Shown here one piece after another: positions 1,785-64,000 of a stretch of 64,000 bases of DNA. The stretch lies in the NCBI GenBank assembly GCA_965655095.1, contig OZ296656.1, forward strand, positions 1,736,001 through 1,800,000, read 5' to 3'. Source of the DNA: Haplodiscus bocki. Taxonomy: Eukaryota. The position numbers were made by a program, and so were the translations under genes. Numbering within the stretch: position 1 is the first letter of the stretch; each line of letters begins with the position of its first letter. The notes below the pieces were generated by a model that worked only from the letters and a program-made list of their open reading frames with translations, had not been told where the DNA came from and did not search any database.

Positions 1785-2405
1785 ATTTCTACAAGGAAAA
1801 TTGAGTTTTTTGCTGAAAAATGTTTTTTTTTCGAAAATTTCGTCATAACCGTCATTTCTTTCGGCACTTTGGCCACAAAGTTTTTATCGTCAAAAATTAT
1901 CTGTCAACTTATGGAGTCAATTTCACAATGGAGCCGCTCCAGAACGCAAGCTATGTGGATCAATGTGGGAGATATGAGGAAATGGTCGTTTTTCGGCAAT
2001 TTTTTCGTACTTTGATCCGTCATATCTCCACACTTATGACGAGTTGGCAGAAATTTTTTGGCATGCGTATAGGTCACAGTTAATGTGCTTCTCACAAAAA
2101 GTTTCGGCGAATTGCGTATGGATACTGGTGGAGGCGGCAGGAAAAAACTGCAAATTTATGCCAAAAATAGGAATCATTCCGTCGTAAGTCCTTAAACAAT
2201 TGAACTGGAATGATCTAATCTGCACCATTGTTCTTAGAATTGTAAAGTATGCCTGCATACAAAGTTTGAACCAAATCCTATGGGTGGGAGCTGAGATCGC
2301 TATTTCTACACCCCCGTTTCCACAGATGTAAAACACTAACTAATACGGCTCGGCAAAGGGGCCCCTCCCCCGCCTCGCAAAGGCCTGATATGGGGCAAAA
2401 ATCCC
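1785..2405 (+). repeat. Subterminal non-coding region, variant A (end of a preceding family member, or a left terminal repeat)
   Basis: Colinear homology with 53515-54133 and, more distantly, 18685-19300: CGTCATAACCGTCATT, GTCATATCTCC, TTTTTGGCATG, TGCTTC(T/A)CAC, CAAAGTTT, GAGATCG. The left boundary is approximate. Confidence 0.85.
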
Positions 2406-2448
2406 TGACCACCCAGTGGAGGCAACGGTGCAATTTACTAGAGGGCGG
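2357..2448 (+). other. Junction signal 1: GC block (palindrome AGGGGCCCCT at 2357-2366) plus core TGACCACCCAGTGGAGGCA (2406-2424)
   Basis: The same two blocks recur at all five unit junctions, 47-49 bp apart start to start. Confidence 0.9.
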
Positions 2449-2505
2449 GATTTTTTCCATCCAACTTTCTTTTTCTGCATCAATTCTGGTGATTGGTCTG
2501 CAATT

Positions 2506-4285
2506 CTAAATTAAATTGTTGTTGTTATAAACTGGAAACTGTGGTTTGTTCTTTTTTACGAATCCTTTCTCCAGGCTCAAGATTAGCTCGCACAACGCAG
2601 ATTCAACTGCTTTGTGCACGGTTTGTTTCACACCGTAAATGTAGCTATGTTCTGCAAAACCTATGAAAGTTTCTTTTTTCTTTTGAAATTCGTGACAGCA
2701 GCAACGAAGGATGGCAAACGTACTTTCCGATCGACTTTTTCCCGAAGTCAGCTCACAACGGTGAAGTAACAAATTCTCCATTTTATCAGCTGCAGAATTA
2801 AACTATAACTACACAGACCTACCCCTGACCGGCTTCCATATCAATGGACGTCTTCAGTGGAGCTCCTTTCCATTCATTGAATCCAGATTTTTTGAAGAAA
2901 TCATTTGTTTGCGCAATGAGATGTTCCCGAAGCATTTTTTGCTGTTTCTGGTTGCCTTTCTTTGTGCTTCAGAGGAACAAAATAGGTGTTATGTGCTATT
3001 GCAAATCAGTTTAATTTTTTTGAAACATGAAATTGTACATTTAGGAGTTCTGTACTAGAAAAATTCAACAATAGGAAGTTCTGCGCCAAAACCTTTCATC
3101 CAATATGTAACTATAATATTCATATCTCGTCCAAAACATATATAGACCGTTTCATGCTTCCGGAAAATAACCAGATGAGAAAAAGTTACTGGCCACATTC
3201 ATCATTGAATTGAGACAGTTGTTTTCATCAAATTATCGTAAACCAAGTATTATGACAACATGATGACCAACTTGATGACGGATCAGTACTATGAAGTCGA
3301 TTGAATATGTACCTTTCATTTATCAAGTCGTAAAAGTGGTATTTTCATTCTCTACATTTTCAGCTTTTGTCAACATAAAACTTGGTTAATGGAAGCACTT
3401 TTAACAATATCTGAAGGTTACGTGTACAGTTAAAACGCTGCCCCTTCACTCTTGATGTCTTTTTTGAGTGTTTCCGGTTTTAAAGACTTTTTTTCTTTTA
3501 CATACTGTTCAAAAGTGGTCGCGTTTTTCACAACCACTTTTATCGGAGTTTTTCGAAAGATCATATTTGATTGGTTCTGACGCATAGATATCGGAGTTTT
3601 ACACTTTTTCAAATTAACTTTGAAATGTTGTGTGAAAAAATCTTGTCGTTGTCAGAAAAAATTATCCGCGAACGAGCGATTTATGGGTGTGTTTTATTCC
3701 AAGAAGTCTTGACGAAGTTAGTTTTTGGATAGTGAATTTTTATATCAAATCATAAATTCTTTAAGGTCAGCTCCACATTGCCAATTTCTCATCCCTCATT
3801 GGAACCCTCTGAAGTAGACAGTTTTGGTATGTGATTCGATCGTTTGAACTCTTCATCCTGTGAATCCTGACTCACTGAAGTCTCAACTGATAATGGTCGA
3901 CATCTTTTGATCGCTGTCGATAAATTGTGCTATTTGTTTCGGGTGATTTACTTTACTGACGTTTTTTTGGACGAACAATGCTGGATAATGCTTGTAGAAT
4001 CGTTGACTGACTACTAAGTATTGTTCCAAAATTTCCAATTTACAAGGGGAACTCCACTGTTATCAGCGTACATGAATTGTTATTGTGTTTGATGGAGCAT
4101 GAGACGCGGGAAAAATTTGAAAAGTATACAACATAATCGTAACTTTAAAATCATCCCGATTGATGCCAAAGATGATTGCCGTTGAACGAACAGTGTCAAC
4201 GGGCTCCTCAAAGCTGAGCGTGTCAATGGTTTTGCTCCGGAAGAGAAATTGTTTCCATTTATTTTTTACCCGTCTACTGCCTAGA
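2506..4285 (-). pseudogene. Possible decayed minus-strand gene in the left arm (also at +16,895, +33,790 and 54270-56020)
   Basis: The segment is conserved between the two diverged families. Minus-strand peptide fragments match (FAILRCCC/FAILHCCC, WMKGFGAEL/WMKCFGAEL, FMYADNS/FMYDDNS, KNKWKQF/KSKWKQV) but are interrupted by stops and frameshifts in both. Confidence 0.4.
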
Positions 4286-5884
4286 AGCTACAAAGTGTTT
4301 ACGTGCAAGTTCGCAGACTCACATTACCTATAGTTTTCTAACAAACTTGACAGTTTGTGCTTCATTTCATCGTGTTTTTACTGATATTGAAAGTTCTTCA
4401 TGTTTGTGTTGCCTGTGGGTTTCGTTCTTTTTTCCATGTGTTCAACCATTCAATCGGATTTACCATTTTTGGAAGGAAATTCAGAACCGAATGATCAAAA
4501 CTGAGATCATATTATCGTTAGTTTTGACCACAAAAAATTTGTTTTCCCAACGAAACTGTTTGGATTCGCACGTGTTTTGTAGAGATGTTAGCGAAAAAAC
4601 ATTGCGTGTGGAAAAAAATTATTGACGAAAACTACTGCTTGAACGTTCATAGCAAACTGTGTGTTATCTTTGGCGTTGAAGTACCACGCGTCTGACTGTG
4701 CATCAACTTTGAGACGCACTTGTAAGCAAACGATTTCTGATTTTGTTCTTTAATTGTTCAAATGAAACTTTGACGAGTTAAAAGTGTAATCATGATTTTT
4801 CGCGGGGAGAAGACTGCCCCTCCTTTTTCTTGTTTCAAAGTTTCAAAAATCCAATCTCTTCTGTGCGATCATGAAATTGAATTTTTTATTTTTAGCAAGT
4901 TACATAATCGCCGTCGATATTATAGATCTAAATTTTATTGATCAACCGCTGCTGCAAGCATTTGTTTTGTCAGCTGACTCACTTGGTTCTGACAGCTTCC
5001 ATAACCTCCGTTCCATGGAATGATTTTGGATGCCAGGGTTTTCTGAAGAGAGTGACAGGATTGTGAGAATCTTTCAATCATAGTTACCTAAGTTGTTAGG
5101 TTTTTGGGTTTTTTACAGGAAGATTTTTTTTCCGGAGGGAATTTTCACCTGTTGTCAGACTTCAGTCATAAACTATAGGGCGTAATTTCAGTTTGCCTGA
5201 TTTAGTAGTTGGCTCTGGGAAAAACTTTATTTTTACTCCCTTTCTCTCCTGCTCATTTTTCATGATATGTTATTTTAAGTTAACTAAAGTGATAAAGTGC
5301 GCATTTTCTCAAACAGCTTAGGGAATTCGTATAGGTCGCCTCAACACTCATGCGTTCTCAATTGATTTTTCCAACTCAACATTCTTGGCTTTTAAGAACG
5401 ATTGTGATGGGCAATGTAGTCTGATCCCCTCACAATTGGGCAAAAAAAATTGGGAATTAAGCGAACTCGCCGTGTACACAATACTAATTGACGGCAATCC
5501 GTAACATCGAGATATGTTCCACTTGTATGGGTGAACGGAAAAAAAGTTCATGCATACGATTTTTAAACACGATACAAGAGTCGCAATTAACACTAATTAC
5601 AACGCCGCCTCTCCGAGTAAAAACCTGTTTGTTTTCTTTCTCTGATAATTGCCTTGGTTTTGCTTCGTTACCTGCGCAAAACCAAGGCCCACATTGCATA
5701 TGTTTTTCTGGATACTGATTTCCGAATTAATTAGATGCTTCCCTTAATTGAACAGTTTGAAAGCCGAGCAAAACGATGTCATTTTGTACGTTGGTTCTAT
5801 AATGGCGCCAACTCTTTACAATGTATTCACTATTAAAGATGAGTGATTGATAAACTTTTGCGCGAATTTGCTTGTGAAAGAGTA

Positions 5885-8800
5885 ATGCCATCTGGTAAGA
5901 GTGATTTTAAAAGACGTCGCTGTGCAAAATGTGGACGCTTCAGTGAACGTAATCACTCCTGTCCAAATAACACTGACAATGTTTCTTCTACTAGCGAACC
6001 ATTAGGAATTTTGTACAGCATACCTGACAGTAATTTGCTGGTCTCCTCTGTTGATACCCTGCACTTAGAATCAACGTTGGAAGCGATGGGACTGTCCTGT
6101 TCCCCAACAAGCGGCATAATTGTGAATAAAACTAACATTCGCCTCAGTTCTGTTCAACCCTCGCAGAGTCTTTCTATAACGGGTGATGGTAATTGTCTTT
6201 TCACTGCTCTGGGCGTAGCCGTCGGTTTATCTCATGAAAGTGGTCATGATTTGAGGAAACTTATTGTGAGTAACATGGACTCGGTGACTTTTCCGGAAAA
6301 CAGTTTGCAAACCTCAATCTATTCCGCTGAGTTCCCCAACCAGAACAAACTTCTCACCAGCCCAACTGTCAACCACTACCTGAAGACATCGCGAATGGCA
6401 GAAAATGGAGTTTTTGGCACTTGTGTGGAAATTTATACCTTTTGTCAAATTTTTAAATTGGACGTTTATGTATACCACAGTATTTTGAAAAGTTGGCTCG
6501 TTTACAAATGCGACTGCTCAAATGACAGACAAGGAGTTTTCATTCAACAAACGCGAACCAGAGATCACTTTGAGGTAATTAGTGGCTTGACCGAAACATA
6601 CCACACTTCATTACTCCTATCAGAAGATTTTGCTGGTTCGAGTAGTCAATGTGGAAATTCAGCAATGAATACTCAATGCCCCGGAATCCAGAAGACAGCA
6701 CTTGCAGCACTTGATGAAACTGAGCCCTTGCAGAAGCGCAGACGGACTTCAGATTATCCAGTCGCCAATTATTTGATCGAGAATGGAGAAATTAAAACAA
6801 CTTTGACAACTTTTTGTTTGGCCGAAGCTCTTTGTGCTGGAGGAAATACTACAACGCAAAGTAAAGGCCCTCCTCCAACTGCTCTGCAACATCGACAACA
6901 TCAATTTCACAGATTGCCTGGGGACGAGTTAACTGATGAGATTTTTTTGAAATTAACTGAAAACTTTGTACCATCATCGAAACTACCTGAAGAATCAACC
7001 GTTGAAATTGAGTCAAAATTGGTTGTGACAGATACCGTCAATGGCGCTGACATTTGTTGCAAGTGCATGCGGGAAGCCACGGTTTATTTTCCACTGGACA
7101 TTAAGGCCTACAGCAATGCTGGATTGGTTAATAGAAAGTTCGGTAGGAAGCTGAAAAACGAAGTTGTACATCTGTGTTGTTCCTGTTACAGCTATTGTAC
7201 TGCACCAAAGGTTGACTGGCAAATGGCTTGGCCAGCTGTTTTTTTCACGCTCCTTTCTGATACTTCCAAGACAGAAGCTTGTTTAGTCGCTATTTGCTCG
7301 TTGTTACCGCTGGAAATAAGGCAACATTGGCTGGGGGTAATAACCCTTTTCCCTATCTGCATCCAGTGTGTTTTAAATCGGCCGCGTATTCTTGGCACAT
7401 GTACTGTTGATGGAACACGGAGATTGGAACGTTTCGAGCAATTAATGAAAACAATGAGACAAAAAGAAATGGCTGAAGCTTTGGACTCTGAACCGTATCC
7501 AAACATACGTTGCCCTTTTGGTTGTTGGACGTTTATCGAAGATCCCGGGTACATACCAGCACAGCATTTTATAAACTTGATAGACAGAACTTTCACATCA
7601 TTCCAAGCGTCTGCATTCAAGAAACTCAGAGGCGCTAGACTCGACTTCCTGTGTCCTTTGATGTGCTTAGAGACGTTTCTAGTGGCTGCCACAGTGCGGT
7701 TACATGAGAAAGAAGGTTTGGTTGTGCAAACTTGTTCTGCGCATGACAGGGGATGTGCGTTACAGTTCTTGCATCCCCCCAGGCATCCGGAGCTGGGACG
7801 AATTCCAACTTTGTTTGAGGAACGATTAGCTATTGCATCACCTTCATTGTCGTGTGTGAGTAGCTTAAAGGCTAATTATGCTAGCCACACCTATCAACTG
7901 TTTCGGAGCGTTGGGTCTTATAGTGGTATGAGTACTGTTTCGTTGAGACGTAAACGGCGTTGGAACATCACTAGCAATCGTTTGTTCCAAGCTGAAAGAA
8001 CCGCCACGTTTTTCAGGTCAGATATTCCCATTTTAATTAGACAATGGGTTGTTCAAGGTAAAGTGATTGAAGATGTCGCCACTGATCTCTCTCAATATCA
8101 GCCGAAAAATGAAAAATTGATGGAGCATGTCGGCGTAGATCTTGACACCTGCATTCGATTGACGAAGGTGATGGACAAAAACGAACAAGAACTTTTGAGT
8201 AATGTGAAATTTCTACAGTGCTACGCTTTGGCTCAACCAAACAATGAACATGGTTGCTCACCTCCTCCTCTGATCAATGATACTGGAGATACACTCTGGT
8301 TTCTTCAAGCGGCATGCTGCATATCTCCAATTTTATGTTCATCCATGGTGTCTGGCGTTAATCACGTTTTGGCAAAAAATATGTTTTCACTGTTGCGTCA
8401 TACATTTGCTCGGTTTGGAAAAGAAAGCAAGTTGCAGCGTATTTCAGAAGCTCAAGCTGACATTGACAGTATATTGAATAACGCGGCAACTAACAATGAC
8501 AACCCAATCCTAATTTCAAACTTTTTGCAGGCGGGTGGCGTGGTGTTGCACGCATTATGTGCTGACTTATGCCATCTGCAGTTGAGCCAAAGAATAGAAT
8601 TGACTGAGAAAATTCTGCGCGACGTAAAAGTGGATACGAAACACGTGATTGCTACAACAACTGATGTAAACAATCTGAGGAACAAGGTCAACCCACCTCT
8701 CAACATCGTCCTATTTGATGTCCAATTTGAGCTTGTGGGATGTGGTTGCGGTTCTCGGGGTACAGATGCTGTAATTTTGCTTCGGCATGGTGGTCGCTTC

Positions 8801-11800
8801 TGCAATTTTTGGCGTATACTCAAAGCTAACAAGTTTGCTGAACCTTTGTTGGACTCACCTGAGACCTTAGTAGAAAAAATTCTACGAGGCTACTGGACGT
8901 TTTTAATCTACCGAGGAACTAACTCTAAAAAGGTGTCGACTGTAAAGTGGCACTATCTCAGTAATTTAACCGGCCAAGGAGTTTTCATTTGTGACAAACA
9001 TGATGTTCCGTTAACAAAGGACTTCCGACGTAGTAACTACTTCTGTCGATGTGGAAGGTCATCATTCCTCAGATGTGCCTACTCAAAGTGCAACAGTTGT
9101 GTGTGTAAGAAACACTTCGACGAGGGAATGAAACATCCGAACTTACGAGTTTTAGTTGCACCTCTAGCAGAACGAAAATTAACGCCTGAAGTACCGAACG
9201 CTGAAGCTGCAATCAATCCCACACAGTGTGAACTGAATTCCAACATAGCTAGTGTATGTGATGAGGACAAAAGCTTTGTTGAACCAGATTTATCCACCAA
9301 CTGTTTAAGTCAAAACTCAAGTTCATCGGTAGCTTCTTTTCTGTGCAACAACATGAACGCAAACTCGATCAGCGAAAGTCAATTGGCCATGAATAAATTG
9401 AACGTTTGTTCGGGTGAAAGGGCCATTGTTGCTGTACAAGAGGCTTCCAGAGAAGAAGATTACAATATTCCTCTCCACATACTGTTGAATTCACGATGCA
9501 ACTTACTGCACAGGAAAAGAAGTCATCCCATTTCCCTAACCGTTAAAGAGAAACGTTTTATGGAAAACATAACAGCTTCCTCAACATCATCAACGCCTTT
9601 GCTTCAACCGGAAGGGCTGCTTTTTCCTACTATTTTCTGGTCCCAAAGTTTCGATGGCAGCATTGAAGGTGCAATTCCAATATCCCTGTTCCAATCCGAA
9701 AAATACAACAAACAAGTGGGGTTTGCAGGTTTAGAAAACATGCTGCGAACTCGCATCACTGATGGGTCACTTTTAACCTCCAGTCACGCATCATATCTGC
9801 AGTTCGTTTTTGATTGTCTTCTTAATTTACAACTGAGTAAAACCGATATTCGGATTGTGTTGAACAGAGGCTGGCAGGAATTGGGCAGTAAGCCTACAAA
9901 TTACCAGTACTACTCCGCTGAAACTTTCAAGTTCGATTGTGAAGAATCCCGGAAAAATGTCTGTGAAGTAGCAGCACTTATTAGAGATAAAAACCCCACT
10001 TATTTTGTTACATACACATGTGGGCAATCTACTCACCCCGGCTTGCGCAAAATTTTCGAGGCTATTGACAAACTTTACCCGCCCGATATGACATCCAAAG
10101 AATTGAGATTATCTGTAATACAAAGTGAATTAATGCCTATGCTTAGATGTTGGCATCGCGCCTCACAGTATGTAATGCAATGGTTGAAGTGTTCGGCCGA
10201 GCAACCTCTGGGACCAGTCTCCCACTTATGGATGAGGTACGAGTGGCAAGATGAAACTTCGGCCTTTCCACACATCCATGCACTAGTGTGTACAGGAGAA
10301 AACAAGTTTGGTCCGGAAGTTCAATCCCGAGTCTGCTGTTCTAAAGAAACATTCATGGGCGCCTTGAACGATTGTTGTCCAGCGTTATCGGATAGCGAAC
10401 GGTTCCGGTTGGGAGAACTTTTCCAAAAATACCAACGGCACGATTGTGGCAAGGGCAAAAATAGATGTAAAAAGAAAACTGATTGGTTGGGAAAGCCAGT
10501 GTGTAGAGTACCTAAATATCCTGCATCCGTTGGGTTCTCTTACAAGCAAATACAACCTAATTACTCGGAAGAAACTTGGGACTTGTTGAGAGCCATGAAA
10601 TTGTCCTATATTGACCCTAACTCTTCAACAGACAAAGCTGAGGAAGAACTGAAAGCTGGAAAGCATCACTACCCTGCTGCTTACAACGAGCACATTTCAC
10701 CAACAAATGCAGCTTTGTTTGCCTTCACTGAAAGTAGTACGAACGTCCAAATTTGTGACGACGAAATGTGTTCACGCTACGTTGCAAAGTATGCTGCCGG
10801 CGTGGAAGGTCGGGCGTTCACAAAAATAGTAGCGTCTGCTGGTGAGGATGAAGTGAAAGTCCAAACGGAACCTATTGTGAACGAAAAAATAGCTGGTGTC
10901 CAAACCAGCGTTACCAAAAAACGTCGGGATGATGATAAACGGAAATCTGTAACAGGAAGAATTGTTAGCATAACTGAATGCTTGTGGTGGGCTTTGCAGT
11001 TGCCATACGTTTGCACAAACGTAGATTTCATTCATGTACCAACAGTTCCGAAAGAGTTCAGATCTGGAATAGTGATAGAAAAACAAATTGCGAGGACGAT
11101 GAACTTCAGTGCTGTTTTTGCCGAAGCTGTTCGAATTCGGAAAAACGTTTTGAAGCTTCCAAAACATCGACAATTAACAAGAAATCAAGAATTGTTGTTG
11201 GCAGATGTCGAAGCAAGTTCGATTACGCCTGACAAAGTGACTATTTTTGGCCTTAGACCACCGGAACTTTTGTTTGTCAGCAGTTTGAAAAGTTATTTTA
11301 GTTGGTTCGTTAGATTCAAAATCAACAGCTCGAAAGGGAAAAGTAGTCATGAGATTTTGTTGAGCCGTGCATCGTGTAATGACTTTTGGGTTGATTGTCT
11401 TGGATACGCTATCAAGATACGCCCACCCGCAATTTCTGATTTTCTTGATTTTTGTTCAACGAGAAGTGATAACCGGAGAGACGAAGTTTTGAAACAGGAG
11501 TGCCGCAAACATGTTCTCCCCAAATTGCAAGGAACCAACAGTTGCCCCAGACTGGTGGCGTACAATCATTGTTTTTCAGATCAAAAAGCCATAGTGGTTT
11601 TCACAAATACTCTACCCAGTAGTCCAACAAAGTTCTTGTTGCATTTTGTGCTAACTTTTGGTTCGTTTGACACCGAACTTGACATTCTCGCAGTTTCCTC
11701 TCTCAGGGAATCTTTTATAGCTGCCAAACTGGTGGAGCGTAACAACATTACTGTTGCAGTCGTGCTTCAACTAGCTCGCCGCTATCTATTGCAACAGCTC

Positions 11801-13984: not shown

Positions 13985-14892
13985 TACGTTAGAAAACACT
14001 GGCAAACTACATTTCAACAGCTTCGCCGACTGTCAAATGTGACGAAGTGAATGCCTTATCCCATAAAAAACATAAAGTTCATAATTTAATCAATACATAA
14101 AGTTTTTTTTAAACGTCCATCTATAGTATATATTCATTTGTCTCCGGTGGTTTCCAAAGCTGCACGTGTAAAGTTTTTAGTCTGTGTGTTTTTGCTTTTC
14201 GCTGTGGTTAAAGATATTTTTGTGAAAGTTTTTTCTTTTACTATTAACAACAATTCAATTGTTCAATTTTTGATGTCTTTGAGAGTAGTCTGCAGACTAT
14301 TTAGCCTACGTACTGTTTTCCAAAGGTTTCGTTGTTTAAGTTAGTTAAACATAAAACTATCCGACAATATTCCTTTGCGGACAAGACTTTGCTGCAATTT
14401 GAACCTGATTTTTGGAACGTTAAAAGGGAGCATCAGGTGTTCATGATTTGCCCCTTAACAATGAACGTTCCTGATTGCCCACCGTATTTAAAGTTGATTG
14501 ATTAGTGATTTTAACTTTTTGCACTGCTTTTTTCCCATATGCTTATGGAACGCTTTGTTTTGTGTATGTCTTAATAACGATGTACACCTACATAGTGTAT
14601 GATAAAAGCCCTGTACTCCTTCCTGTTTCGACCGCAAGGTGGAACACTTGGTAAAACGTTAGTGAAACTTCTATACCAAAAACCAGACACACTCAAATGA
14701 GCAAATTTATATTTAGAGGTTTTTGGAACGATGTTTTTTTCAGCTCTTCCGTTTTATACTATTATATAATATAATGCCAATGACAGTTATCTTCTGTGTT
14801 CCATCGTAGTGTACCTATGCTGTTGGAGTCATTAAATGTCGTTTTTTTGTCGTCACCCCTTGTCGTTGTTTTTCAACGTTCTGCAGATCTAA

Positions 14893-15649
14893 ATGAAACA
14901 TCTTATCATAGCTGATTCCCTTGGGAGAAGACTTGTCATGAAGCACGAAGACCTGGAAGTGAAGTTTTTCCCTGGAGCCACGGCATCTTGCCGTCGGGTA
15001 ATTGAGTGTTTAAGAAACCTAACAACGTTTTATGAATCAATCATTTTGTTCATCGGGGGAAATGGACTTACAGGCCGGGGCACACGACGGGGAAAGACTC
15101 CTGAGCAAGTGAGTAATTTCAACACAATATCAAGTTGGTTGCGACTGAAAACATTTTAGAATTAGACTGGTTGCAACATCAGGGTGCATTGTGTATGAAT
15201 TGATCCGCAGGTGATATTTCCCTGCGAAAATAATTTCCAATTATTAAGCAGAGCTTCAAATGCAACTGAAAATATTTTTTTCCTCCAAATTTTGAAGAAA
15301 GTTCAACAAAATCAAACGAAGTGCATGTTCAGCTCAAAAATTTTTTGTTAACTCTTAGGTGGTTCAAGACATTATGTACCTCGTGCGTCTGGCCATTCCA
15401 AAGTGTTACACAGTATACTGTCTGGCTCTGGTCATGAGATCCAAACCTTGCCTCTTAGATATCAAAAGGGTTAACGATGGACTCAGAAACTCTGTGGGTC
15501 AATACAATTTTGTGTCGGTGGCTAGCAAAATGAGCTCCGAAAGGAATTTGATGGATGGCGTGCATTTATCTCGTCACGGTGTTTCAAACTTGATGTACAT
15601 TCTAAGGAAAAGAGTTTTGGGTACTGTACTACCTTTTTCTGACCTGTGA
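14893..15649 (+). CDS. SGNH/GDSL-family hydrolase (esterase), two exons join(14893..15108,15359..15649), 168 aa
   Basis: Exon 1 is 72 codons ending CAA|GTGAGT. The 250-bp intron ends TTTTTTGTTAACTCTTAG|GTG in phase 0, in frame with the 96-aa ORF. The joined protein has the four SGNH blocks in order: LIIADSL (Ser), FPGA (Gly), FIGGNG (Asn), DGVHL (Asp/His). Confidence 0.88.
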
Positions 15650-19300: not shown

Positions 19301-19343
19301 TGACCACCCAGTGGAGGCAACGGTGCAATTTACTAGAGGGCGG
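19254..19343 (+). other. Junction signal 2 (core 19301-19319)
   Basis: AGGGGCCCCTCCCCCGCCTCG followed by TGACCACCCAGTGGAGGCA. Confidence 0.9.
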
Positions 19344-36148: not shown

Positions 36149-36238
36149 AGGGGCCCCTCCCCCGCCTCGTAACAGTTTTGTGTCGCTAAAAAGCTTGACC
36201 ACCCAGTGGAGGCAACGGTGCAATTTACTAGAGGGCGG
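36149..36238 (+). other. Junction signal 3 (core 36196-36214)
   Basis: Same sequence as junction 2. Confidence 0.9.
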
Positions 36239-51762: not shown

Positions 51763-53043
51763 ACGATTAATTGAAGCAACAAAACTCAAAGAAATGTTAT
51801 GTCAATCACTGTTGTGACATTTTTTACTACAGCTAAAAATTACCTATAGAATCAAGAGAGGTATTACAGACAAGTAAAACAATGTGCCAGTAATCATTTA
51901 GCAAACTACCGAATGTTGTTTCCATGCAACATCGACTGTTACAAGGCATTCGACCGTAAGGTGTTTGCCCAAAATTAGGAGTTCATTTGGCGTTAAAGAA
52001 AATGAGAGTTGTCGTAAAGTGGATTTATTTTACGTGCATCAAAATGAACTGTCAATTGTTGCTACCATTCATTTGCAGTTAAATTGAGAGTTTACTTTGT
52101 TTCACTGGACATTTTTATTTATCACAGTTTAAATTGTTTTCTGTAGTTGGTACATATAATGTTCATTAAAAATTAAATGGATCATCTAGAGAAAAGTTTG
52201 TGTGCAGCTCCTTACAACTAATTACCTCAAACCTAATTCGTTGTCCACTGAGACAAAAAAGTTGCTACAGTTATGTAACTATAACATAATTTTCGCAAAT
52301 TATTTTACAAATAATTCGGCATTGGAAGAAAAAAAAGATAAGATTTTTTCAAAAATAAATTGGCCCAGAATAAAACTTGTGTCACCAACAGTTTGCCAGC
52401 CCAGTAGTTTACTACGAAATTTCAGCAAAGCTTGATTGCCGCCCCTTCAAAAAGTTGACGGATTTCAGATAGATCAATTAGAAAAACTGACTTTTTTAGC
52501 AGGTTTTTCTTTTTTCTTCGACAAAAAATCGTCATAACCGTCATTATTTTCGGCAATTTGGCCAAAACATTTTTTCGCTGCAAAATTATTTTTCTTTTGA
52601 TACAGGTCCCGTCACGTTGTGACGAATGCTCACATCACTTTTTTAACATCAACCTGGGAGAAATGACAAAATGCTCGATTTTGGCCTCTTTTTGACAAAT
52701 TTGAAAGGTCATATCTCCTAGGGCAAAAGGCCCTGGCCAAAAATTTTTGGCATGTAGGTAGTTAACAGCAAATGTGCTTCACACAAAAAATTTGGGTCCA
52801 ATGCTATGGGTAAAGTGTGGAGATAATGCGGGAAAAACATCGAAACCTGCCAAAAAACAGGATCATTGCGTCATATCTCCCCAACCAAAAGAAAAAAAAT
52901 GATGTAAGTGCCAAAAATCTTCATACATCGGCGGACTCTATCCACATGCAAAGTTTCATCAAAATCGTATGGTTAGGTTTCGAGATCGTCTCCTTTTCGG
53001 CGGGTTGAGTGTAAGTGTAAACTTGATTTTTGAAACTCGGCAC

Positions 53044-53140
53044 AGGGGCCCCTCCCCCGCCTCGTAACAGTTTTGTGTCGCTAAAAAGCTTGACCACCCA
53101 GTGGAGGCACCGGTGAAAATCACCAGGTGGCGGTCACTGG
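53044..53140 (+). other. Junction signal 4 (core 53091-53109), overlapping an imperfect hairpin
   Basis: The core is identical to the others. The sequence CCAGTG-GAGG-CACC-GGTGA-AAA-TCACC-A-GGTG-GCGGT-CACTGG can fold back on itself. Confidence 0.88.
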
Positions 53141-54133
53141 AGAAGCACCTCTGAAATAGGATAGTTTACTGATAGTCTTTTCTTCGAACACAGTAATGAG
53201 TTTTGCAAATGCCTGTTTAATACATTGAAATTGAGCCTGTGAAATCTTCATTGAAATCGACAAGACATCGAGGACGAAGCTTGCAAAAAGTTCGGCCCCG
53301 TTGTTTCTCCGTGTCGCTTCGCTAATCTACGAAACAACGGGGCGGGGCAAAAAACAATTTGAATTTCGATTTTTTTTTTCAATTTTGGGCCAAATTATGA
53401 TTGTTTTTCCAGAAAATTTCAATACCTCAACCCACAAAAAAGGTTCAAATTCAAAACAACTATGCAGTAAGAAAAATTTGGGGGAAAAATGGACAAAAAA
53501 ATTGCCAGATATGAATTCTACAATCAAAACTGAGGTTTTGGAAACTTTTAATTTTTTTTCGAAAATTTCGTCATAACCGTCATTTCTTTCGGCAAAGTGG
53601 CCGAAAATTTTTCATCTTCGGAAAATTGCCTTTCAAGTTATGGAGTCGATTTCATACTGGAGCCACTCCAGAGTGCAAACTATGCACTTCAATGTGGGAG
53701 CTATGACGAAATGGTCGATTTTCGGCATTTTTTTCCAAATTTCATCCGTCATATCTCCACACCTATGACGAGTTGGTAGAAAATTTTTTGCATGCGTGTA
53801 GCCCTTAGTTATTCTGCTTCACACGAAAAGTTTCGGCCAAATGCATGTGGTTACTTGCAGGGCTGTCGCTAAGAAACTGCAAAATGAGGCCAAAAAACAG
53901 AATCATCCCGTCATAACTCCCCTACCATTTTTGCTAGAATGATTTAACTTGCACCATTAATCTTAGAATTGAAAGTTATGTCCGCATGCAAAGTTTGATC
54001 CAAATCGTATTGGTGGGAGCTGAGATCGTTATTTTCCTATACCGTATTTGCATAGAGTTATTTCTTATATTTTAACGCGAGGCAAAGGGGCCCCTCCCCC
54101 GCCTCGCCAGGACCTATGAGGGGCGTAATCCCG
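53091..54133 (+). mobile_element. Putative 1,043-bp non-autonomous mini-unit running core to core
   Basis: Begins with the core plus a CGGTG-AA-T-AC-AG--GGCGG motif like the long units, and ends with subterminal region A' and the GC block. No credible ORF. Confidence 0.6.
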
Positions 54134-54176
54134 TGACCACCCAGTGGAGGCGACGGTGAAAATTACCAGAAGGCGG
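54086..54176 (+). other. Junction signal 5 (core 54134-54151, 18 bp)
   Basis: AGGGGCCCCTCCCCCGCCTCG (54086) and TGACCACCCAGTGGAGGC are unchanged although the flanks have diverged. Confidence 0.9.
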
Positions 54177-57100
54177 GATTTTTTGCATCCAATTTTTTTG
54201 CTGCATCATTTCTGGTGATTGGTTCTTTTTTCTAAAGGGTTGTTTTTATAAAAGGAAACTGTTGTTTTTTTATTTACGATACCTTACTCCAGGCTGAAGA
54301 ATAGCTCACACGACGCGGTACAACTGATACATGGATACATGGACAGTTTGTCTCACACCGTAAGATTGCGTTTTTTCCGCAAAAGGTATAGTTTTGTAGA
54401 CTTTTTAAAAGTTGACAACAGCAGCAATGAAGGATGGCAAACATACTTTCTGGTCGATTTTTACACAAACTCAGGTCAAAACGGCGCTAATGTAACAAAT
54501 TTTTAAAGTTGTCAGCTGCAGAAATAATATTTAACTTCACCCATTTACCCGTGACCGACTTACATAACAATGAACGTTTTCATTGAATAACCTTCCCATT
54601 TGTTTAATCCGGAATTTTTCAAAGAAATCATTGGCTTGCAGAATGGGTGATGTACCTGAAGCATTTCTTGGTGGTCCTCCATACCGTTTTTTGTTCTTCA
54701 GAGAAACAATATTGGTGTTGCGGGCTCGTCCACGTCATTTGGCCTTTTTCATACATGAAAAAGTACAGTTAGGTGTTCTGTACCAGAGAAATTCATGAAC
54801 AAAAAGTTCCGCGCCAAAACATTTCATCCATTATGTAACTATTTTATTCATGCACCGTTCAAAACGCATTAAATACGTTTAATGCGTCCAGAAGCAGAAC
54901 AAAAGGATTAATGGTAACTAGCCATTTTCATCATTGACTTGAGACACTTGTCTCCATTGTCTCCATCAAGTCATCGTCAGCCATAGATTATGACAAGTTA
55001 AAGGCCACTTTGATGACGTATCAGTGCTGATAGTAGACTAAATGTGTGTCTTTCTTTTGTCAAGTGGTGAAATTCGTGCTTTGATTTTCCTGATTTTCAG
55101 CTTTTACCAACAATAAACGTGGTTAGTGAAAGGAATCGAAACAGTTTCTGAAGGTATCATGCTCAGTTAAAACGATGCTTCTTTACTATTGATGACTTTC
55201 AAGAGTGGTTTCGATTTTAAGAATTTTTTTCTTCTACAGACCGAACCAGAACTGTCGCGTTTCACAAACGTTTTTGCGTGAGGTTCTTGGAAGAGGCTAT
55301 TCGGTCGGTTCCGACGCATACATAACGGAGTTTTACACTTATTCCAAAATAACTTTTGAATTTTGTGTAAAAAATTACTTGTTGTCAGATAAAATGATCA
55401 GCGAACGAGCATGTTATGGATACGTTTTATTCTTGTGAAGTTTTGTCGAGGTTTCTTTTTGGATATTGCGTTTTTATATCAAATCGTAAATTGTTTTACG
55501 TGAACTCGGCATCGCCAATTTCCAATCCCGCATTTGAACCCTTTCATGTAGATACTTTTTCGTATGTGATAGAAACGTATGAACTGTTCATCCTGTAATT
55601 CCTGACTCACTGAAGTCTCAACTGATTTTGGTGAACAATTTTTGGCTTGTGTCGATAAATTCGGCGCATTAACTTTGGTAAATTACTTTGCTAACGTTTT
55701 CCTGGGAGAAGAGTGCTGTGTAACGCTTGTCAGAATCGCTGGCTGACTACTAATACTTTTCAATAATTTCTAAAACTAAAAGGGGGACTACGCTGTTATC
55801 ATCGTACATGAAATGTTGAAATAGTTAATGGCGCATTGGAGACGTGGGAAATTGAAAAGTAAACAAAATAATCGTTACTTTTAATGTATCCCCTTGGTTG
55901 CCAACGTTGACTGGCATTAGAGGAACAATTTCTACAGGTTCAACAAAGTTGAGCATATTATTGGTTTTGCTTAGGAGGAGAACTTGCTTTCATTTACTTT
56001 TTAACCGTCTGCGGCCTAAACACCGGTCACGTAACATTTAGTGTTCGCCATTCGTTAGCTGGTGAGTTTGGTGTCAGTCATGCGGTAAACTGAAAACAAG
56101 GGATAATTTCTTAGACAAACAGACCGTTTCCGCTGTCAGTGCGGGAATGAAAGATTACGTAACATTCTTGTTTCACGCTTTTGAAATAAGGGTTTTATCT
56201 CTTTTCAACTGAGCAGTAAAACGCTGTAACATGATATCCTACTTTGTTCAACAGTTCAATGTCAGTTTAATTTAAGCTAATTTTTCATGTTCATTGCTTT
56301 AGATATATTTGCTGTTCTTATCGCCAACTACAGGACGGTTAAGTTTCCAGCAGTAAAAAGCAAGCTTCAGATTGATTGCCATTGTAGTCAGCTTGAAGTA
56401 AAGGCAGATAATTGTGTAGTCTGTGTCATTATAGGAAAATTCTTCATGATTTTCGGGTGCTCATTAAAAATAACGTTCGAATATATGAAAGGCAGATTAA
56501 ACTTGAGTATTTTTTTGTTTTTGGTTGTGCTGTGCTGGCAGGGAAGAAAATGATGCAATTTTGCGTGTATCTGCAAAAGTTTATTTTCGTTTTTGTTTGT
56601 GTTTGCCAATTGTCACCATATTGAGTAAATTAATGACAAAAAGTGTGTTTCTCGTGCAGTTGTGTGAATGGTCTCTGTTTCATTCCACGTCAAAAGGGGG
56701 AAGTAATTGGCTGGTACCAATTATCGCAAGTGAAAGTTTTTGGGGAATTTTGACATACGCCTCCTTCCTGTAGGAGTTTGCTGGTTTTTGTTGCAGACCA
56801 AAACTTGCGACCTGAAGCCAAAGATTTTATATCGGCTTCTCTTTCTTGAAGGGTTAATTTGGAAAGTAGTTTATTGCTTCTTGTAAATGTTTAGAGACTT
56901 TCATTGTGTTTTCTATGTGCTTTGCCTGTAGGACTTTTGCTATTTGATGTCGGCACGAGTGAAGCACTATATGTAAAAGGCATCTTCCCAAAGCCTTGGT
57001 TTCGCTCAGAGGCCTTCGCAAAACCAAGGCGCTTCTGTTTTTCATTATTCAATTCGCAATGGAAACTGTAACCGTTATGGAAACAGTCCTTTCCTAAAAA

Positions 57101-60100
57101 CTTCAAAAAGGTTTGAAATGCGGAAAGGAATAAATATCACAGTCTGTATGTCGAATTTATAGCAGCCTCTGGAGCTCTATTTGTCGCAAATGGGTCCTTG
57201 GCGGCTTCAATTATCTGGGGTCTGTAATTTTTTTTGTCTTTCAATTAGGTTTGGTAAATTTTGACATGCTGCTTCCCTTTTTTGTGCAATCAAACCTGCA
57301 ACCAAAAAGCAAAACATGAATCGTCGCCGTTGTACTTCTTGTGGACAATTTGCTGTTGCAAGCCATGTTTGCCTGAAGGACATTGATCGAGAACTGCAAT
57401 TTGATGAGCCGCTGGGCATCTTATACAAAATTCCCGACATTTCAATCTCCGTTTCACCAGTTGCACGAAGTGAAACTCTGAACTGTCTCTCAACTTTAGG
57501 TCTAACTGATTTTTTAGTCTCTCTAGACGTTTCGATCGCAAATGACAGTATCATTTATAATTTGCGTCCGGCGCGTGTAACTGCGATTCTTGGCGATGGT
57601 AATTGCCTTTTCTCATCCTTAGCAGTTGCTCTCGGTTTGTCACAGGATTGTAGTTCAATTCTACGGAATAAAATTGTTAGCAACATGATGTTCATCAACT
57701 TCCCTCCAAACAGCTTACAAACCACAATTTACTCCGCTGATTTTCCAAACCAATACCGTGTTTTGCTTTGTACTTCGATTCAAGAGTACCTCAGTTTGTC
57801 GAAAATGGAAGAAAATGGAGTCTTCGGAACATGCGTTGAAATATACGCGTTTTGTCAGATTTTCCAAATGGACGTATATTTATATCATGTTCCTCTGAAA
57901 TCCTGGTTGGTTTATGAATTCTCTCTGAGCACGAATCGTCGTGGAATTTTCATTCAGCAAACCTGGAATGCAAATCACTTTGAAGTAATCAGTGAGTTGG
58001 TTTCAGTCGCAAATGAAGGAAACGCTGCAGGTTCACAAAGAATTTCCTGTCTTAGTTCCAACGCAATGCATTTCTCTTCGTCAGTTTTGGGAGAGGATAT
58101 TGAATCTTTCAGGTACCCAGAAAACACAACAGGGGTCCCACCAGCGAAAAAAGCAAAACACACTGCGGATCCATCCACCTCGAAGACATGCCTTGAAACT
58201 CACGTCACACACATTCCAAGTCAGAACTCCTGTAACGCAAAGTCAGATCAAAATTTTCCGATGCTACCGTTGTCAGAAAACGCTACCAAATCTGTTCTGA
58301 GCAGAGAAATACCCAAAATCGAGGATCTGTACACTAACACTGCTACGGTTTCACACAGTGATGCAACAATTGAACAAACGACAGATGGTAATTCTAAGTC
58401 TGCTGACGGAGAGTTTTGCGGCAAATGCTTGCGACAATCCACGCTGCAATATCCGTTAAAGCTTACTAAGACAGAAAAGTCAGATTTTATAAACAGAATG
58501 TTTGGTAACCGAATCAAGGACGCTTTTCCCATATTATGCAATCAATGTCTACTTTACTGTACTTCCGAACGCATCGAGTGGAGTCACGCATAGCCATCTG
58601 TTTTTTTCACGCTTTTGAGTGATGAAAAAATGCCCAAGGAGCAGCAGTTGAATGTTTTAACGTTGTTATCTTGGGAACTGAGACAGCAATGGATGGGATG
58701 CTTGGAAAAATTTACTCCATGAGTCCAACAGTTTCTCAATGGAAAAGAAATCAATGGGAAATGTGTCGTTGACGGAACCGCTCGTTTGCATTATTTCCAG
58801 AAACTGATCAAAACTCTTCAACAAGAACAAATAGCAGTAGCTTTGGATAAAGAACCTTACCCGAACGTTCGGTGCCCATTTGGTTGCTGGTGTTTCATTG
58901 AAGAATCCGGTTTAATCAATGCTAAACACTTTTTGAATCTATTCGACCCAGCTTTTACGTCTTTTGGAGCTTCTAGTCATTTGCATCTTAGAGGAATTAG
59001 GTCAGATTTCTTGGTTCCAACGTCATCGTTGCGGAAGTTTTTAATTGCAACAACTGTGCGTGTAGACAAAGTAGAAGGATTGGTTGTTCACGCTTGCCTT
59101 ATGCACTCAAAGGGGTCGTCTGTGCAATACCTTCATCCTCCATCACATCCTGTCCTGTCAAGAACTGCGTTAATTCACGATGAGCGTTTGAGTATGGTGG
59201 CACCAACAATTTCGTGGATAACAAATATTAAAGCAAATTTCGCCAGTCATACCTACCAGTTATTGAAAAGTGTTGGTTCTTATAGTGGAATGAGTACAGT
59301 TCAGTTGCGGCGGCGAACGCGTTGGGACATCACCAGCGATATCTTGTACCACGCTGAAGGCCTCGCGTGCCGTTTTCGGGAAGATGTTAAAACGAAGATT
59401 TGTGAATGGGTGAAAGAAGGTAAAATCGTTGAAGATGTAGCTTTGGGGATTCTTGACTATCCTGCACAGATTGAAAACATATCAGAGTGTTTGTTGCCTG
59501 CCCTTTCTACAGATTTGGAGACTTGTGTAGAAATAGCTAAAGTTCTAGATAAAAATGATAAAGACTATTTAAACAACGTGGAAGCTTTGAGTTGTTATTC
59601 CTTCGCCCACGGAACCGGCGAGTATGGTTGTTCGCCCCCTCCTCTGAATTGTAAAGGCAGCAATGTTTTTTGGCTTGTACAAGCTGCACTGTGTCTGTCA
59701 CCGTTGATGTGTCGTTCTTTAGTAACATCAGGTAAGTATTCTGTGACCTTGAGGCCTTTGATATCTTCGCTGAGGAATGTTTTTATTACCTCAAAGGCAA
59801 TGAAGAAAGCCAGCAATACGCTACTTCTACGGCGCTCGGAAGAAGCAATAAACACCTTGCTAGAGAAAAACCGAACTGAAGAGCAGTTAAAAGGTGTGAA
59901 GTACTGTTGTTGCCATCTCGCCGCACAGTTTTTGGCAACCGTGTCAGAATTTTTGCCACATCCCCTTAACGAATCGAAAAAATATAACTTGTTATACAAA
60001 TCTGCAACTTCCCGTTGAAACAACTCACGCTATATTCACCACCAACTCCCCCAATAATTTGCGGAGCAAAAGCGAACCTCCGCTAAAGTTGGTTATCAGC

Positions 60101-63100
60101 GATATCGGCTATGAACTGATTGCAGTCGGAGCAAAGGATGGAGGCCCGGCCGCCGAGCCAAGGTTGATGGTTCGACATGGAGGTGACTTCCAGAAGTTCT
60201 GGCTTTTGGAGAAAAACTGCAGATACGCTAAGAAGATGACAGAGTCTAGAACTGAGGCTTTGAGTTCAGGTCTTCGTGGATATTGGACAATAGCAATTTA
60301 TGAGAAATCAAGAAATCTTGAATTAGCTGATTTGAAATGGAAATTGCTGAGCACTTTGACTGGTCAGGGCGTCTTCATCTGTGAGTCTCATGACGTTCCT
60401 TTGACAAGAGACTTCAGAAAGAGCAGTTTTCGTTGTAGATGCACCCGTGCTTCTTTTTTGCGTTGCCCTTATTCCCAATGTAACAGTTGCGTATGCAAGC
60501 GTCACTTCAACGAAGGTCTACAGAATCCGAATAGACGTGTTCTTGTTGATCCAATGCCGATGTCGGAAAAGAGGGCAAATACGCATTTCTCTCCTGTTAA
60601 TTCAGAGTCGTCTAGCTTGCGAGTTGTATCCGAAACATCATCTATTGTAGAGTCTATCGAATCAAGCGAGCCTGATGCAGCAGCAATTGCCTTTGGTATG
60701 GTGTCCAACAACAATTTGTCTGTTGTTGGGGATTTTTCTTTGGAAGTTGACAACCATGAACCTCTTGAAGAAAGCATAAATGTATTGGCTAGTCTCCAAA
60801 CTTGCCCTGATAAAAAAGCTCTTTTCATCGATCCACATCGAAATGAAGACCTTTTCAAACTGCCACTTCACATTCTGCTCAATTCTCAATGCAACCTCTT
60901 GTACCGGCATAAAGGGAGTCCAATCAGTTTGTCGCTGAAAGAAAAACGTTTTTTAGAAAACATTGCAGCAACTTCCACGACAGCGCTGCCTCTAATTCAA
61001 CCAGAAGCTCTTTTGTTTCCATCAATTTTCTGGTGTCAAGCTAACAACGGTAGTTTTCATGGAGCAATACCAGCCGCGCTTTACAACAACTCCAAGTACA
61101 ACAGACAACTGGGTTTTGCTGGTTTGGAAGACATGCTTCGTACGAGAATCAAAGATGGTTCGCTGTTGACATCATGCAATCCAACTTATTTGCAGTATGT
61201 GTTTGACAGCCTTTTGAACATGCAGCTTCACAAAACTGATGTTAGATTGGTTTTAAATCGGGGATGGCAGGAAGTGAGTTCCGGCCCTACAAATTGTTCA
61301 TTTGTTTCAACGCAAACATTCAAGTTTGACTGTGCGGAAAGTCGTAAAAATGTCTGTGAACTCGCAGCTTTAATTCGAGATAAAAATCCAACGTACTTTT
61401 TGACATATACTTGCAGCCAGTCGACCCATCCTGGCGTTAGAAAAATTTTTCAGGCACTCTATGAAATGTACCCACCAGAAACTACAAAAAAAGAACTGCT
61501 CTCTGCGGCCATTCAAGCAGAATTGATGCCGATGCTCAGGTGTTGGTATAGAGCTTCACAATACGTAATGGAGTGGGTGAAAAAGTCTCCAGAAAGACCA
61601 CTGGGACCGGTATCCCACATTTGGATGCGGTATGAATGGCAGGAGGAGACAGCTGGGTTCCCTCATTTGCATGTGATACTTTGTACTCCAGAAGACAAGT
61701 TTTCTAATGAGGTGAGATCTCGAGTTTGCTGTTCAAAAGAAACATTTTTGGGTGCATTAGAAAGCAGTTGCCCTCAATTAACGAAAGACGAAAGGTTGCA
61801 TCTCGGTGAGTTATTTCAAAAGTATCAAATTCATAACTGTACCAAAGGGCCTCAGCGATGCCATAAAAAAACAGATCGTCTCAATCAGCCAATTTGTCGT
61901 GTGCCAAGATATCCACCATCGAATGCATTTTCGTTCAAAGAAGTTCCCATTAACTTCTCTTCTGAAACAATGGACTTGTTACAAGCCATGGACTTAGCAG
62001 ACATTGACGTTAACACGTTGTTGCCGAAGGTCAAAGACCCTCTAATTGCCGGGAAGCATCACTATCCGACTGTGTCTAACGAGCATTTCTCGCCAACCAA
62101 TGCAGCTTTGTTTGCACTGACTCAATCAAGCACTAACGTTCAAATTTGCGACGATTACACGGCACCCCGTTACGTTGCGAAGTATGCAGCGGGCATTGAA
62201 TCTCGAGCAGCAGCCACAATTGTTGCAGGTCAGACAGAGAACAGTGTAAAGGTTCTGACAGAACCGATAGAACATGAGAAGATAGCAGGTGTTCGAGCTT
62301 GTTTGAAAAATTTGCGTCAGGAAGAGAAACGACAATCAGTAAAAGGTCGCATTGTCAGTATTACTGAATGTCTTTGGTGGTGCTTACAACTTCCTTACGT
62401 CTGCACAAATGTTGACTTTGTACATGTGCCTACAGTTCCCAAAGAATATCGTTCAGGAATTGTAATTGAGAAACGTTTTCACAAGTCTCCGAATTTCAGC
62501 GCCACTTTCACTGATGGAATCCGTGTGCGAAAAGAATTATTGGAACTCCCAAAACTTCGACAATTTACAAAAAGTCAAACCCTCCTCCTTGCAGATGTTG
62601 AAAACAGTTTCATTTCTCCTGACAAGGTAACTGTTTTTGGACTGAGGCCGCCGGAACTTTTGTTCGTATCGCAGTTAAAAGACTATTACAGCTGGTTTGT
62701 GCGCTGGAAACCCAGAAGAACAAACTGCCTTAGCAATCACGAGAAGTTCTTGAAAAAAGGTTTACGTAAAAGCTGCTGGGTTGATGCACTTGGATATTTG
62801 GTTAAACTGCGCCCATCTGCTGTTAACTCTTTCGTAAGTCTCTGTCAAGAAAAGTTTGGTGAAGAACGGAATCAGATCTTGAAACGCGAAATGAGGAAAC
62901 ACATTGTTCCCATTCTTGAAAACAAGAACAGTTCTCAGTTCGTTGCTCATTGGAAAAACTTGTCAGAAGAAGAGGCCGTTGTTGTTTTAGCAACAGTCTA
63001 CCGAATAACCCAACAAAGTTTTTACTTCATCTGTTACTGACCGTCGGGAAACTTGACACTGAGTTGGACATCTTGAACGTCCAAACTTTCAAAGAAGCTT

Positions 63101-64000
63101 TCATAAAAGCGGGTATTTTGCTAAACTCAACCGTCACTGATGGCGAAGTGAAAGAAATAGCTAAGAAGTATTTGCTGGAACAGCTTCGCTTCACTCCAGG
63201 GTCATCTAAATTGATTGACACTTACTTGGTAATGGCCCATAGTGTCATATCGGAGGCACTGTTGATAAACAATCTCTTTTTTGCTGCTGCTTTACCACCT
63301 GTTCTCGACAAAAGCGTCCTGGAGGAATGCGAAGAAACAGTCACAATTCAACTGGCTATGGAAAAGTGTAAAATGATAGCTTTCCTTCAGACATGTCAGA
63401 CTGAATTACCTGCAGAGCAAACGATGATCGACGCCACTTTCAATACTCCAGTGCCTTGGAAGCCACTTTTACAGAAGAGCCCGGATCAAAGTAAAAACTC
63501 ATATTTAGAGCAACGTCAAGTTTTGGACGAACTCATTAATTCAATAGACATGTATAAACGAGGACATTGCACTTTCATAAGACATCAGATTGTTTTCGGT
63601 CCACCAGGATGCGGCAAAACTTTTGTGATGCTGAAATCTCTTGCTTACGCCTTATGTCAAGGATAGCATTGTGTGGTGACATCCATAGCAGCTGAAAGAT
63701 CTGCTGCTTTAGCTGGAAAACATCTGAATGCTTTGATACCATTTCCAGTTGAAAAATGTTGCTCTGCAGAATCACTTTCGAAGAAGGCTCTGTCCAATTT
63801 ACAACGATCTCCTATCAAAAGCCGAGTTTTACAGCACTTAGACGTAATTTTCGTTGAAGAACTTTCGATGATATCTAGCGAGCTTTGGGCAGCGACAGAT
63901 CATGTTTTGCAAGTTGTCACAGCAAATTATGTTCCTTTCGGCGGAAAACTCGTTGTCGCAACTGGTGACTTCTTTCAACTTCCTCCGCCCTCTGGATCTT
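54134..64000 (+). mobile_element. Diverged, decayed relative of the element (truncated by the window end)
   Basis: Starts at the core. 54134-56020 aligns with 2406-4285, and a homologous RepHel starts at 57316. Confidence 0.9.
57316..64000 (+). pseudogene. RepHel pseudogene (ZnF, OTU, Rep, start of helicase)
   Basis: Retains GDGNCLF, PTYFLTYTC, YEWQEETAGFPHLHVIL, YVAKY, GPPGCGKT, FVEELSM and GDFFQLPP. In-frame stops at 58591 (TAG where the intact copy has Trp), 58720 (TGA) and 63664 (TAG); frameshifts near 59960-60060 and near 62990. Confidence 0.93.

Follow-up and report, generated by a model that had tools for sequence, protein, structure and literature searches.

A polarised head-to-tail array of Helitron-like rolling-circle elements joined at a short conserved motif in Haplodiscus bocki

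Units, joints and encoded proteins

A 64,000-nt stretch of Haplodiscus bocki DNA (NCBI GenBank assembly GCA_965655095.1, contig OZ296656.1, positions 1,736,001 to 1,800,000 of the forward strand) was analysed over its whole length and is referred to as the window, with positions counted from its first letter. The window contains part of an array in which Helitron-like rolling-circle elements follow one another head to tail with a single polarity. It comprises three autonomous units (family A), one non-autonomous mini-unit and one degenerate unit (family B), and each unit spans the distance from one origin-like site to the next. The 18-mer core of this site, TGACCACCCAGTGGAGGC, was present in five exact copies, all on the plus strand, at 2406, 19301, 36196, 53091 and 54134, the same five junctions that had been given in a preliminary description of this DNA; it did not occur in 100 shuffles of the window, and no additional site was detected in the window even with up to two mismatches allowed. 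A 20-nt GC block, GGGGCCCCTCCCCCGCCTCG, was found in exact form 46–48 nt 5' of each core, at 2358, 19255, 36150, 53045 and 54087. Five exact joints are far above chance expectation.

Self-BLAST showed 2349-53115 to consist of three tandem copies at 99.9% identity, repeating every 16,895 bp; this period is above the limit of Tandem Repeats Finder, which reported nothing. The three family A copies were compared column by column (3 × 16,895 bp) and differed by 9 substitutions and no indels, a number that marks the activity as very recent. The family B unit is 65–74% identical to the 16.9-kb family A unit at the DNA level. Self-BLAST and alignments thus recovered the layout described earlier, namely a partial upstream end, three 16.9-kb copies, a 1-kb mini-unit and a diverged relative, all in one orientation and each bounded by cores. 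When the five joints were aligned, the GC block and core proved invariant, the 26–28-nt spacer between them varied with the type of tail upstream, and the sequence after the core varied with the type of head downstream. The units and joints are as follows (L numbers denote related loci introduced below).

1733..2405, plus strand: 3' tail, type X, of an upstream unit; 77–78% identical to mini-unit tails and 93% to the tail at L012:12064-12665
2358..2377, plus strand: GC block in tail X, with further exact copies at 19255-19274, 36150-36169, 53045-53064 and 54087-54106
2406..2423, plus strand: joint 1, 18-mer core; core positions 2-11 are the family-wide 10-mer GACCACCCAG
2406..19300, plus strand: family A autonomous unit, copy 1, 16,895 bp, from self-BLAST and copy comparison
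2424..2447, plus strand: 24-nt leader after the core, which travels with the downstream body and not with the upstream tail
5843..13984, plus strand: 2,713-aa open reading frame (ORF) for a Rep-helicase protein (RepHel), copy 1; first ATG at 5885
16941..17972, plus strand: ORF3, 343 aa, copy 1; present in all related elements
18690..19300, plus strand: family A tail, type Y, conserved over about 600 bp, ending in the GC block and a 26-nt spacer; 65–66% identical to tails X and X'
19301..36195, plus strand: family A copy 2, with an intact RepHel ORF at 22738-30879 and ORF3 at 33836-34867
36196..53090, plus strand: family A copy 3, with an intact RepHel ORF at 39633-47774 and ORF3 at 50731-51762
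53091..54133, plus strand: 1,043-bp non-coding mini-unit with its own leader, which contains a strong hairpin, and a type X' tail
54134..64000, plus strand: family B unit, truncated by the window edge; 95.7% identical to L012:1-7765
57316-58593 (OTU), 58786-60018, 60059-63040 (Rep) and 62950-63666, plus strand: family B RepHel, broken into four ORFs

Family B carries the same gene set as family A, but its RepHel is degenerate, as the four ORFs show. A degenerate head or core was searched for in 1-2405 and none was found. Positions 1-1732 have no match elsewhere in the window or in the fetched loci, and the body of the upstream unit is not recognisable there; this segment could be the body of an unfamiliar non-autonomous unit, or host DNA beside a truncated tail.

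The 2,713-aa ORF is intact in all three family A copies, with the domain order OTU, Helitron-type Rep, PIF1 helicase and C-terminal GIY-YIG. The domains are located in copy 1 at the following positions.

~6182-6482, plus strand: OTU protease domain, within the 5843..13984 ORF
~10274 and ~10778, plus strand: Rep, with the HUH motif HIH and the motif YVAKY, respectively, within the 5843..13984 ORF
~12212, plus strand: Walker A motif of the PIF1 helicase, within the 5843..13984 ORF
~13616-13840, plus strand: SLX1-like GIY-YIG nuclease; the same domain is present in copies 2 and 3

Rep motifs I (FVTYT), II (HIH) and III (YVAKY, with two tyrosines) are all intact. The isolated Rep domain scored 30.1 bits against Pfam Helitron_like_N (cut-off 28.9), and the same family was matched by all 10 aligned relatives, with a best E value of 9.7e-11. 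The helicase matched Pfam PIF1 (E 9.3e-12), PIF1 helicases in the PDB (E 2e-12) and the helicase part of Helraiser (E 1e-5). The assignment to a Helitron-like lineage made in the preliminary description agrees with an intact HUH and YxxKY Rep, the Helitron_like_N match and the PIF1 helicase. When the Rep domain was compared by sequence with solved structures, either singly or as a profile, no match was obtained, Helraiser included, and for this reason the RepHel of the window is placed, by sequence, on a distant branch of the Helitron-like elements. The C-terminal nuclease matched Pfam GIY-YIG (E 7e-9), its closest solved relatives were SLX1 structure-specific endonucleases, and no match to Exo_endo_phos (the AP endonuclease family of Pfam) was found in the ORF. 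The GIY-YIG domain is retained in all RepHel relatives down to 44% identity.

ORF3 homologues at 43–93% identity were found in every related element (L010-L016). ORF3 had no Pfam match, and its language-model features weakly resembled POT1, CTC1 and RPA with low recognition; it may be an OB-fold protein that binds single-stranded DNA (ssDNA). Its AlphaFold (AF2) model was unusable, with a predicted local distance difference test score (pLDDT) of 29. Two ORF pieces at 14893-15646, a candidate spliced SGNH esterase, gave no Pfam match when each was scanned separately.

Joints in related loci and position of the break point

The comparison set consisted of the window and 12 related loci from four independent public assemblies, taken as the DNA around 11 ORF3 or RepHel homologues together with one walk along a 1.55-Mb contig (L021). 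ORF3 and RepHel homologues were found only in ENA assemblies. A scan of JGI metagenomes for the core gave 9 matches, two of which were related contigs from one coral-type sample (L001 and L008) and seven of which were chance bacterial matches, and a scan of IMG/VR for the core gave none. The 10-mer GACCACC(C/T)AG, hereafter GACCACCYAG, occurred 24 times in the 252 kb of window and loci, with about one occurrence expected by chance; all 24 lay 26–30 nt 3' of a GC-rich block, with a head directly downstream and on one strand per locus. With the L021 walk and two one-base variants included, 27 distinct joints were obtained, sharing a common build of GC-rich block, 26–30-nt spacer, GACCACCYAG and family-specific head. 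The same joints were present in independent assemblies and in Logan contigs from two samples, and they are therefore not an assembly artefact.

The invariance of core and GC block claimed in the preliminary description held within the subgroup of the window but not beyond it. Only families A, B and C and the mini-units have the 18-mer without change, the exact GC block is likewise confined to this subgroup, and across distant families the 10-mer alone is invariant, being followed by TGGAGGC, AAGCGGG, TGCAGGC, CCGGGGA or CGCTGGA. A mini-unit at L010:10005-11037 has a tail without the canonical GC block (...GGGGGAGGCCC) and is still joined at the motif, with G replacing T before it; the exact GC block is therefore not required for a joint.

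Several of the loci are themselves arrays. L010 reads [A][mini'][mini'][mini][A], whereas the window joins A directly to A; L021 and L012 read [element][mini][mini][mini][B][A] over at least 30 kb; and L017 and L018 contain runs of 1.0–14-kb units. Tandem mini-units related to that of the window are also found in L010, L017 and L021. The leftward walk along L021 in search of an array edge reached none, the array continuing for at least 30 kb. RepHel in L017 (10001-18190) and L018 (10001-17557), at 40–44% identity to that of the window, is antisense to joint polarity, whereas that of the window is sense. The unit acts as a cassette, in which gene orientation is free. In L014 a 1.96-kb internal tandem duplication (2669-4624 and 4597-6556, 98.8% identity) lies inside a degenerate RepHel. 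For a lineage whose RepHel is 51–52% identical to that of the window (L016, L019 and L020) the ends were not definable, only coding parts aligning, at 66–79%; a minisatellite with a period of about 52 bp lies just 3' of RepHel in this lineage (L016:18442-19101, L019:18557-20131 and L020:18126-18629).

Copy number was assessed by mapping Logan contigs from two host samples onto window positions 50500-56000. K-mer depth in run X1 was about 180 over the family B head; depth was 240–1,400 over the family A body and 2,200–10,800 over the tail and mini-unit region (52524-54179), so that tails and mini-units were 10–50 times deeper than unit bodies in both samples. Such an excess is expected if many non-autonomous units share the joint site. 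The contigs branch at 54175, where another head type follows an identical core and leader. Neither circles nor host flanks were seen in the Logan contigs, which are short.

Tails and heads were typed by clustering 45 nt on either side of each joint. Among the 27 joints, 14 types of tail and 13 of head were distinguished, and these occurred in 20 combinations; five tails paired with at least two heads, and four heads with at least two tails. Where two joints had the same tail, with 0 mismatches over its final 40 nt, the sequences began to differ +7 to +18 from the first base of the 10-mer, as in 19301 versus 53091 in the window, L001 versus L011, and 20627 versus 23699 in L018r, and all break points fell within +0 to +18 of the motif start. 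Many unrelated partners join base-precisely at one point, and units are therefore joined site-specifically within the motif. The earlier proposal that the core is where units meet is thus borne out by the 27 joints and their 20 tail-head combinations, with the switch in similarity lying inside the motif or at its edge.

An ordinary tandem Helitron array would arise if concatemers formed by read-through of the 3' end were inserted as a block, mixed neighbours then representing separate nearby insertions. Homogeneous tandem Helitron arrays have been described from plants, bats, Drosophila and fungi and attributed to concatemers of rolling-circle origin (PMC11934779, PMC5148889, PMC7492417, PMC12001565), and only 9 substitutions among the three family A copies would fit a single concatemer event. 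Against this, the 20 tail-head combinations with zero intervening bases at one motif and the invariant 10-mer common to different families are left unexplained; heterologous joints are as precise as homologous ones across the 27 joints, and base-precise adjacency arising by chance more than 20 times is not credible. We regard this explanation as improbable.

Shuffling by homologous recombination or unequal crossing-over in the ~600-bp tails and leaders, or by segmental duplication, was also considered, the core being kept for some other reason such as Rep binding for excision only. The tails are 65–93% alike over about 600 bp, and multi-unit blocks such as [mini][B][A] are found in more than one array, so that block duplication does occur. 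Crossovers in tails would, however, yield chimeric tails and no new pairing of 65%-alike tails with unrelated heads, whereas similarity switches within 7–18 nt of one point in every informative pair; moreover, homologous recombination in eukaryotes is not efficient over a stretch as short as the invariant 18–42 bp. This explanation is given very little weight.

The position of the joint within the motif was approached from the sequences on either side. Without exception, the 24-nt leader that follows the core travels with the body on its right. Motif position 8 (C or T) tracks the head and not the tail: one tail of L017r precedes the C form at one head and the T form at another (18673 versus 20739), and in either form this base is paired with a base of the head (CACCC/GGGTG and CCACCT/AGGTGG, in L018). 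The CCACC of the motif pairs with the head as CCAC-CCA-GTGG in the families of the window, and as a compensatory GCAC-CCA-GTGC in L015r. In L013, which belongs to a more distant lineage, a homologous tail is followed by TGAC and then by unrelated sequence. Because the leader, position 8 and the pairing go with the head and L013 switches after TGAC, the joint most likely lies in the first few bases of the motif. The view of an 18–19-bp core as the joining unit is accordingly retained as to where units are joined, and is revised in that the 24 nt after the core and motif position 8 belong with the downstream head.

The same observations bear on a linear transposon with its own ends that targets the motif, inserting just 5' of any GACCACCYAG, that is, at a resident 5' end, much as IS608 inserts 3' of TTAC, with no circle or shared origin. 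That the motif, leader and hairpin arms go with the head is as expected if the motif is a conserved left end, and HUH transposons of the IS200/IS605 and IS91 groups choose targets resembling their own end cleavage sites (PMC10288648). The present data fit such a transposon as they fit nicking and rejoining at a shared origin; what sets the two accounts apart is the form of the intermediate and the side to which the motif belongs. We consider the linear transposon unlikely.

The 24-nt leader is identical in heads B and C (54152-54175 versus L011:12659-12682 and L008), which are unrelated from +42, where GGATTTTTT... stands against TGAGGTTTGAATCGG...; the switch at this point resembles another modular boundary. 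In most leaders a second AC(C/T)AG motif follows the first at a distance of about 27 nt. The GC block is palindromic in part; its interpretation as a general simple hairpin terminator was rejected, a 7-bp stem being present only in tail X'. An Rfam search of the joint region gave no real match, and a host RNA gene as the target was rejected, no Rfam family matching the joint.

Models of unit movement

On balance, and with a modest degree of confidence, we favour a model in which the origin-like site would be nicked and rejoined by the two-tyrosine Rep and units would integrate at existing sites. The motif, together with its flanking block and hairpin, is read as a nick-and-join site because a two-tyrosine HUH Rep is the sole shared enzyme that cuts and rejoins at a defined sequence. 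In this model the Rep would nick one strand at the motif, the PIF1 helicase would unwind the DNA, and synthesis or transfer would stop at the next downstream motif, so that one or several units could leave as a single piece. The piece would be rejoined into another resident copy of the motif, regenerating the joint on both sides, and the fused GIY-YIG nuclease may nick the duplex target. Elements would in this way land in their own joints, building arrays rather than scattering, and a transfer that stopped only at a later site would carry several units with it. Movement of several units would fit the shared [mini][B][A] block, which is 94–96% alike between the window and L021/L012. The triplication of family A may be a concatemer or may reflect three successive self-insertions. 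The joints suggest that units insert into their own joints, not at random. In Rep-encoding ssDNA viruses a conserved nonanucleotide has lineage-specific flanks, an arrangement comparable to the joint site.

The GIY-YIG domain could also act by homing, cutting the duplex joint, after which repair would copy a unit from another array and Rep-Hel would serve replication only. The domain is fused to every RepHel of the clade (Pfam E 7e-9; SLX1-like in the PDB), and GIY-YIG homing enzymes recognise long sites. Repair copying needs homology on both sides, however, and would reproduce existing neighbour pairs and not new tail-head combinations, and SLX1-type domains are structure-specific, not sequence-specific. 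Homing is judged to be a very doubtful account.

Several points weigh against nicking and rejoining at the motif. Neither a nick, a circle, an empty site nor an array edge was observed in the comparative data, all the evidence is comparative, and the assemblies are few and their hosts possibly related. The blocks shared between arrays ([mini][B][A], window versus L021/L012) imply that the joints are not all independent events. Placement of the joint inside the motif draws on single cases (L017r, L015r and L013). Around the core, an inverted pair of 7–9 bp is present at joints 1 and 5 and absent at joints 2–4, and joint folds were no more stable than shuffled sequence, the mini-unit excepted (z = -1.9). 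No GACCACCYAG was found within 10 kb in RepHel relatives at 51–52% identity (L016, L019 and L020), for which reason the trait is assigned to a subclade. Finally, the model leaves the entry of a first copy into a genome free of sites unexplained.

A broader reading, put forward tentatively and with less than even confidence, is that of a eukaryotic cassette system run by an HUH Rep-helicase, in which any DNA between two GACCACCYAG sites would be mobilisable, a start at one site and a stop at any later site would excise one or several units, and reintegration would take place only at existing sites. Many families of elements, and the parasites of these elements, would then have landing arrays in common whose growth would spare host genes; they would form a self-confining transposon community, integron-like in function and based on rolling-circle chemistry.

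Helitron-type elements are believed to choose targets of two bases (AT or TT) and to disperse over the genome. Integration by nicking and rejoining at the motif would, if true, be the first case of a eukaryotic rolling-circle transposon with origin-like, site-specific integration, and would explain the origin of large one-way mixed-family arrays. It would also provide a natural Rep-helicase-nuclease with a defined DNA site of ~10–40 nt, whose nicking and strand-transfer chemistry would be directly testable, and would represent transposon amplification with little host damage.

Comparison with known systems

A search of open full texts, with subscription journals outside its scope, found no published Helitron description of seamless mixed-family arrays on one invariant joint or of site-specific self-targeting. 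Canonical Helitrons (HLE1) have a 5' TC, a 3' hairpin-CTRR and an AT target. The elements of the window share with these, Helraiser included, a rolling-circle Rep-Hel transposase and differ from them in the lack of all three features and in a Rep without a sequence or profile match to Helraiser. No AT flanks were found in the 27 joints, the units starting with or within GACCACCYAG, and the tails end in variable C-rich sequence, mostly followed by T; the T variant of the motif contains CTAG, but this T tracks the head. No TT was found at any joint, and none of the loci held a host-flanked copy by which ends could be defined. For Helraiser, circular intermediates with joined ends and 3' read-through that mobilises downstream DNA have reportedly been demonstrated by experiment (PMC4778049, PMC5876387).

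HLE2 elements (Helentron/Helitron2) resemble those of the window in a giant ORF with a two-tyrosine HUH Rep and PIF1-type helicase, an upstream OTU and a C-terminal nuclease, in an accessory gene resembling those for ssDNA binders, in non-autonomous derivatives that share ends, in the absence of target-site duplications at joints, and in the occurrence of known tandem arrays in the group (PMC11417382, PMC4067079, PMC12001565). The nuclease of the window is GIY-YIG (SLX1-like), whereas that of Helentrons is an AP endonuclease; GIY-YIG has been noted once before, in a moss HLE2 family (PMC11417382). In contrast to HLE2, no TT target and no consistent short terminal inverted repeats were seen in the elements of the window; their ends are a GC-rich block (3') and GACCACCYAG with a hairpin (5'), and many families are joined base-precisely at one motif.

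Among prokaryotic elements, IS200/IS605 and IS91/ISCR are alike in strand- and orientation-specific insertion beside a short match to their own cleavage site, with hairpins guiding recognition (PMC10288648). They differ in being prokaryotic and small, with targets of 4–5 nt. IS91 shows one-ended transposition and tandem multimers, and to our knowledge neither group builds long mixed arrays at its own joints. The Rep of adeno-associated virus (AAV) at AAVS1 and the relaxase TrwC at oriT-like sites provide further cases of HUH integration at a site that mimics their own origin, the integrated DNA often forming head-to-tail concatemers. Both belong to viruses or plasmids and use a mimic site carried by the host, whereas here the target would be the element's own joint, common to many families. 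Integron cassette arrays are one-directional series of unrelated units bounded by a recombination site, in which folded ssDNA is recognised and one or several units move. They depend on a tyrosine recombinase, promoterless genes and a fixed platform with attI, and the likeness is one of analogy only, not of homology.

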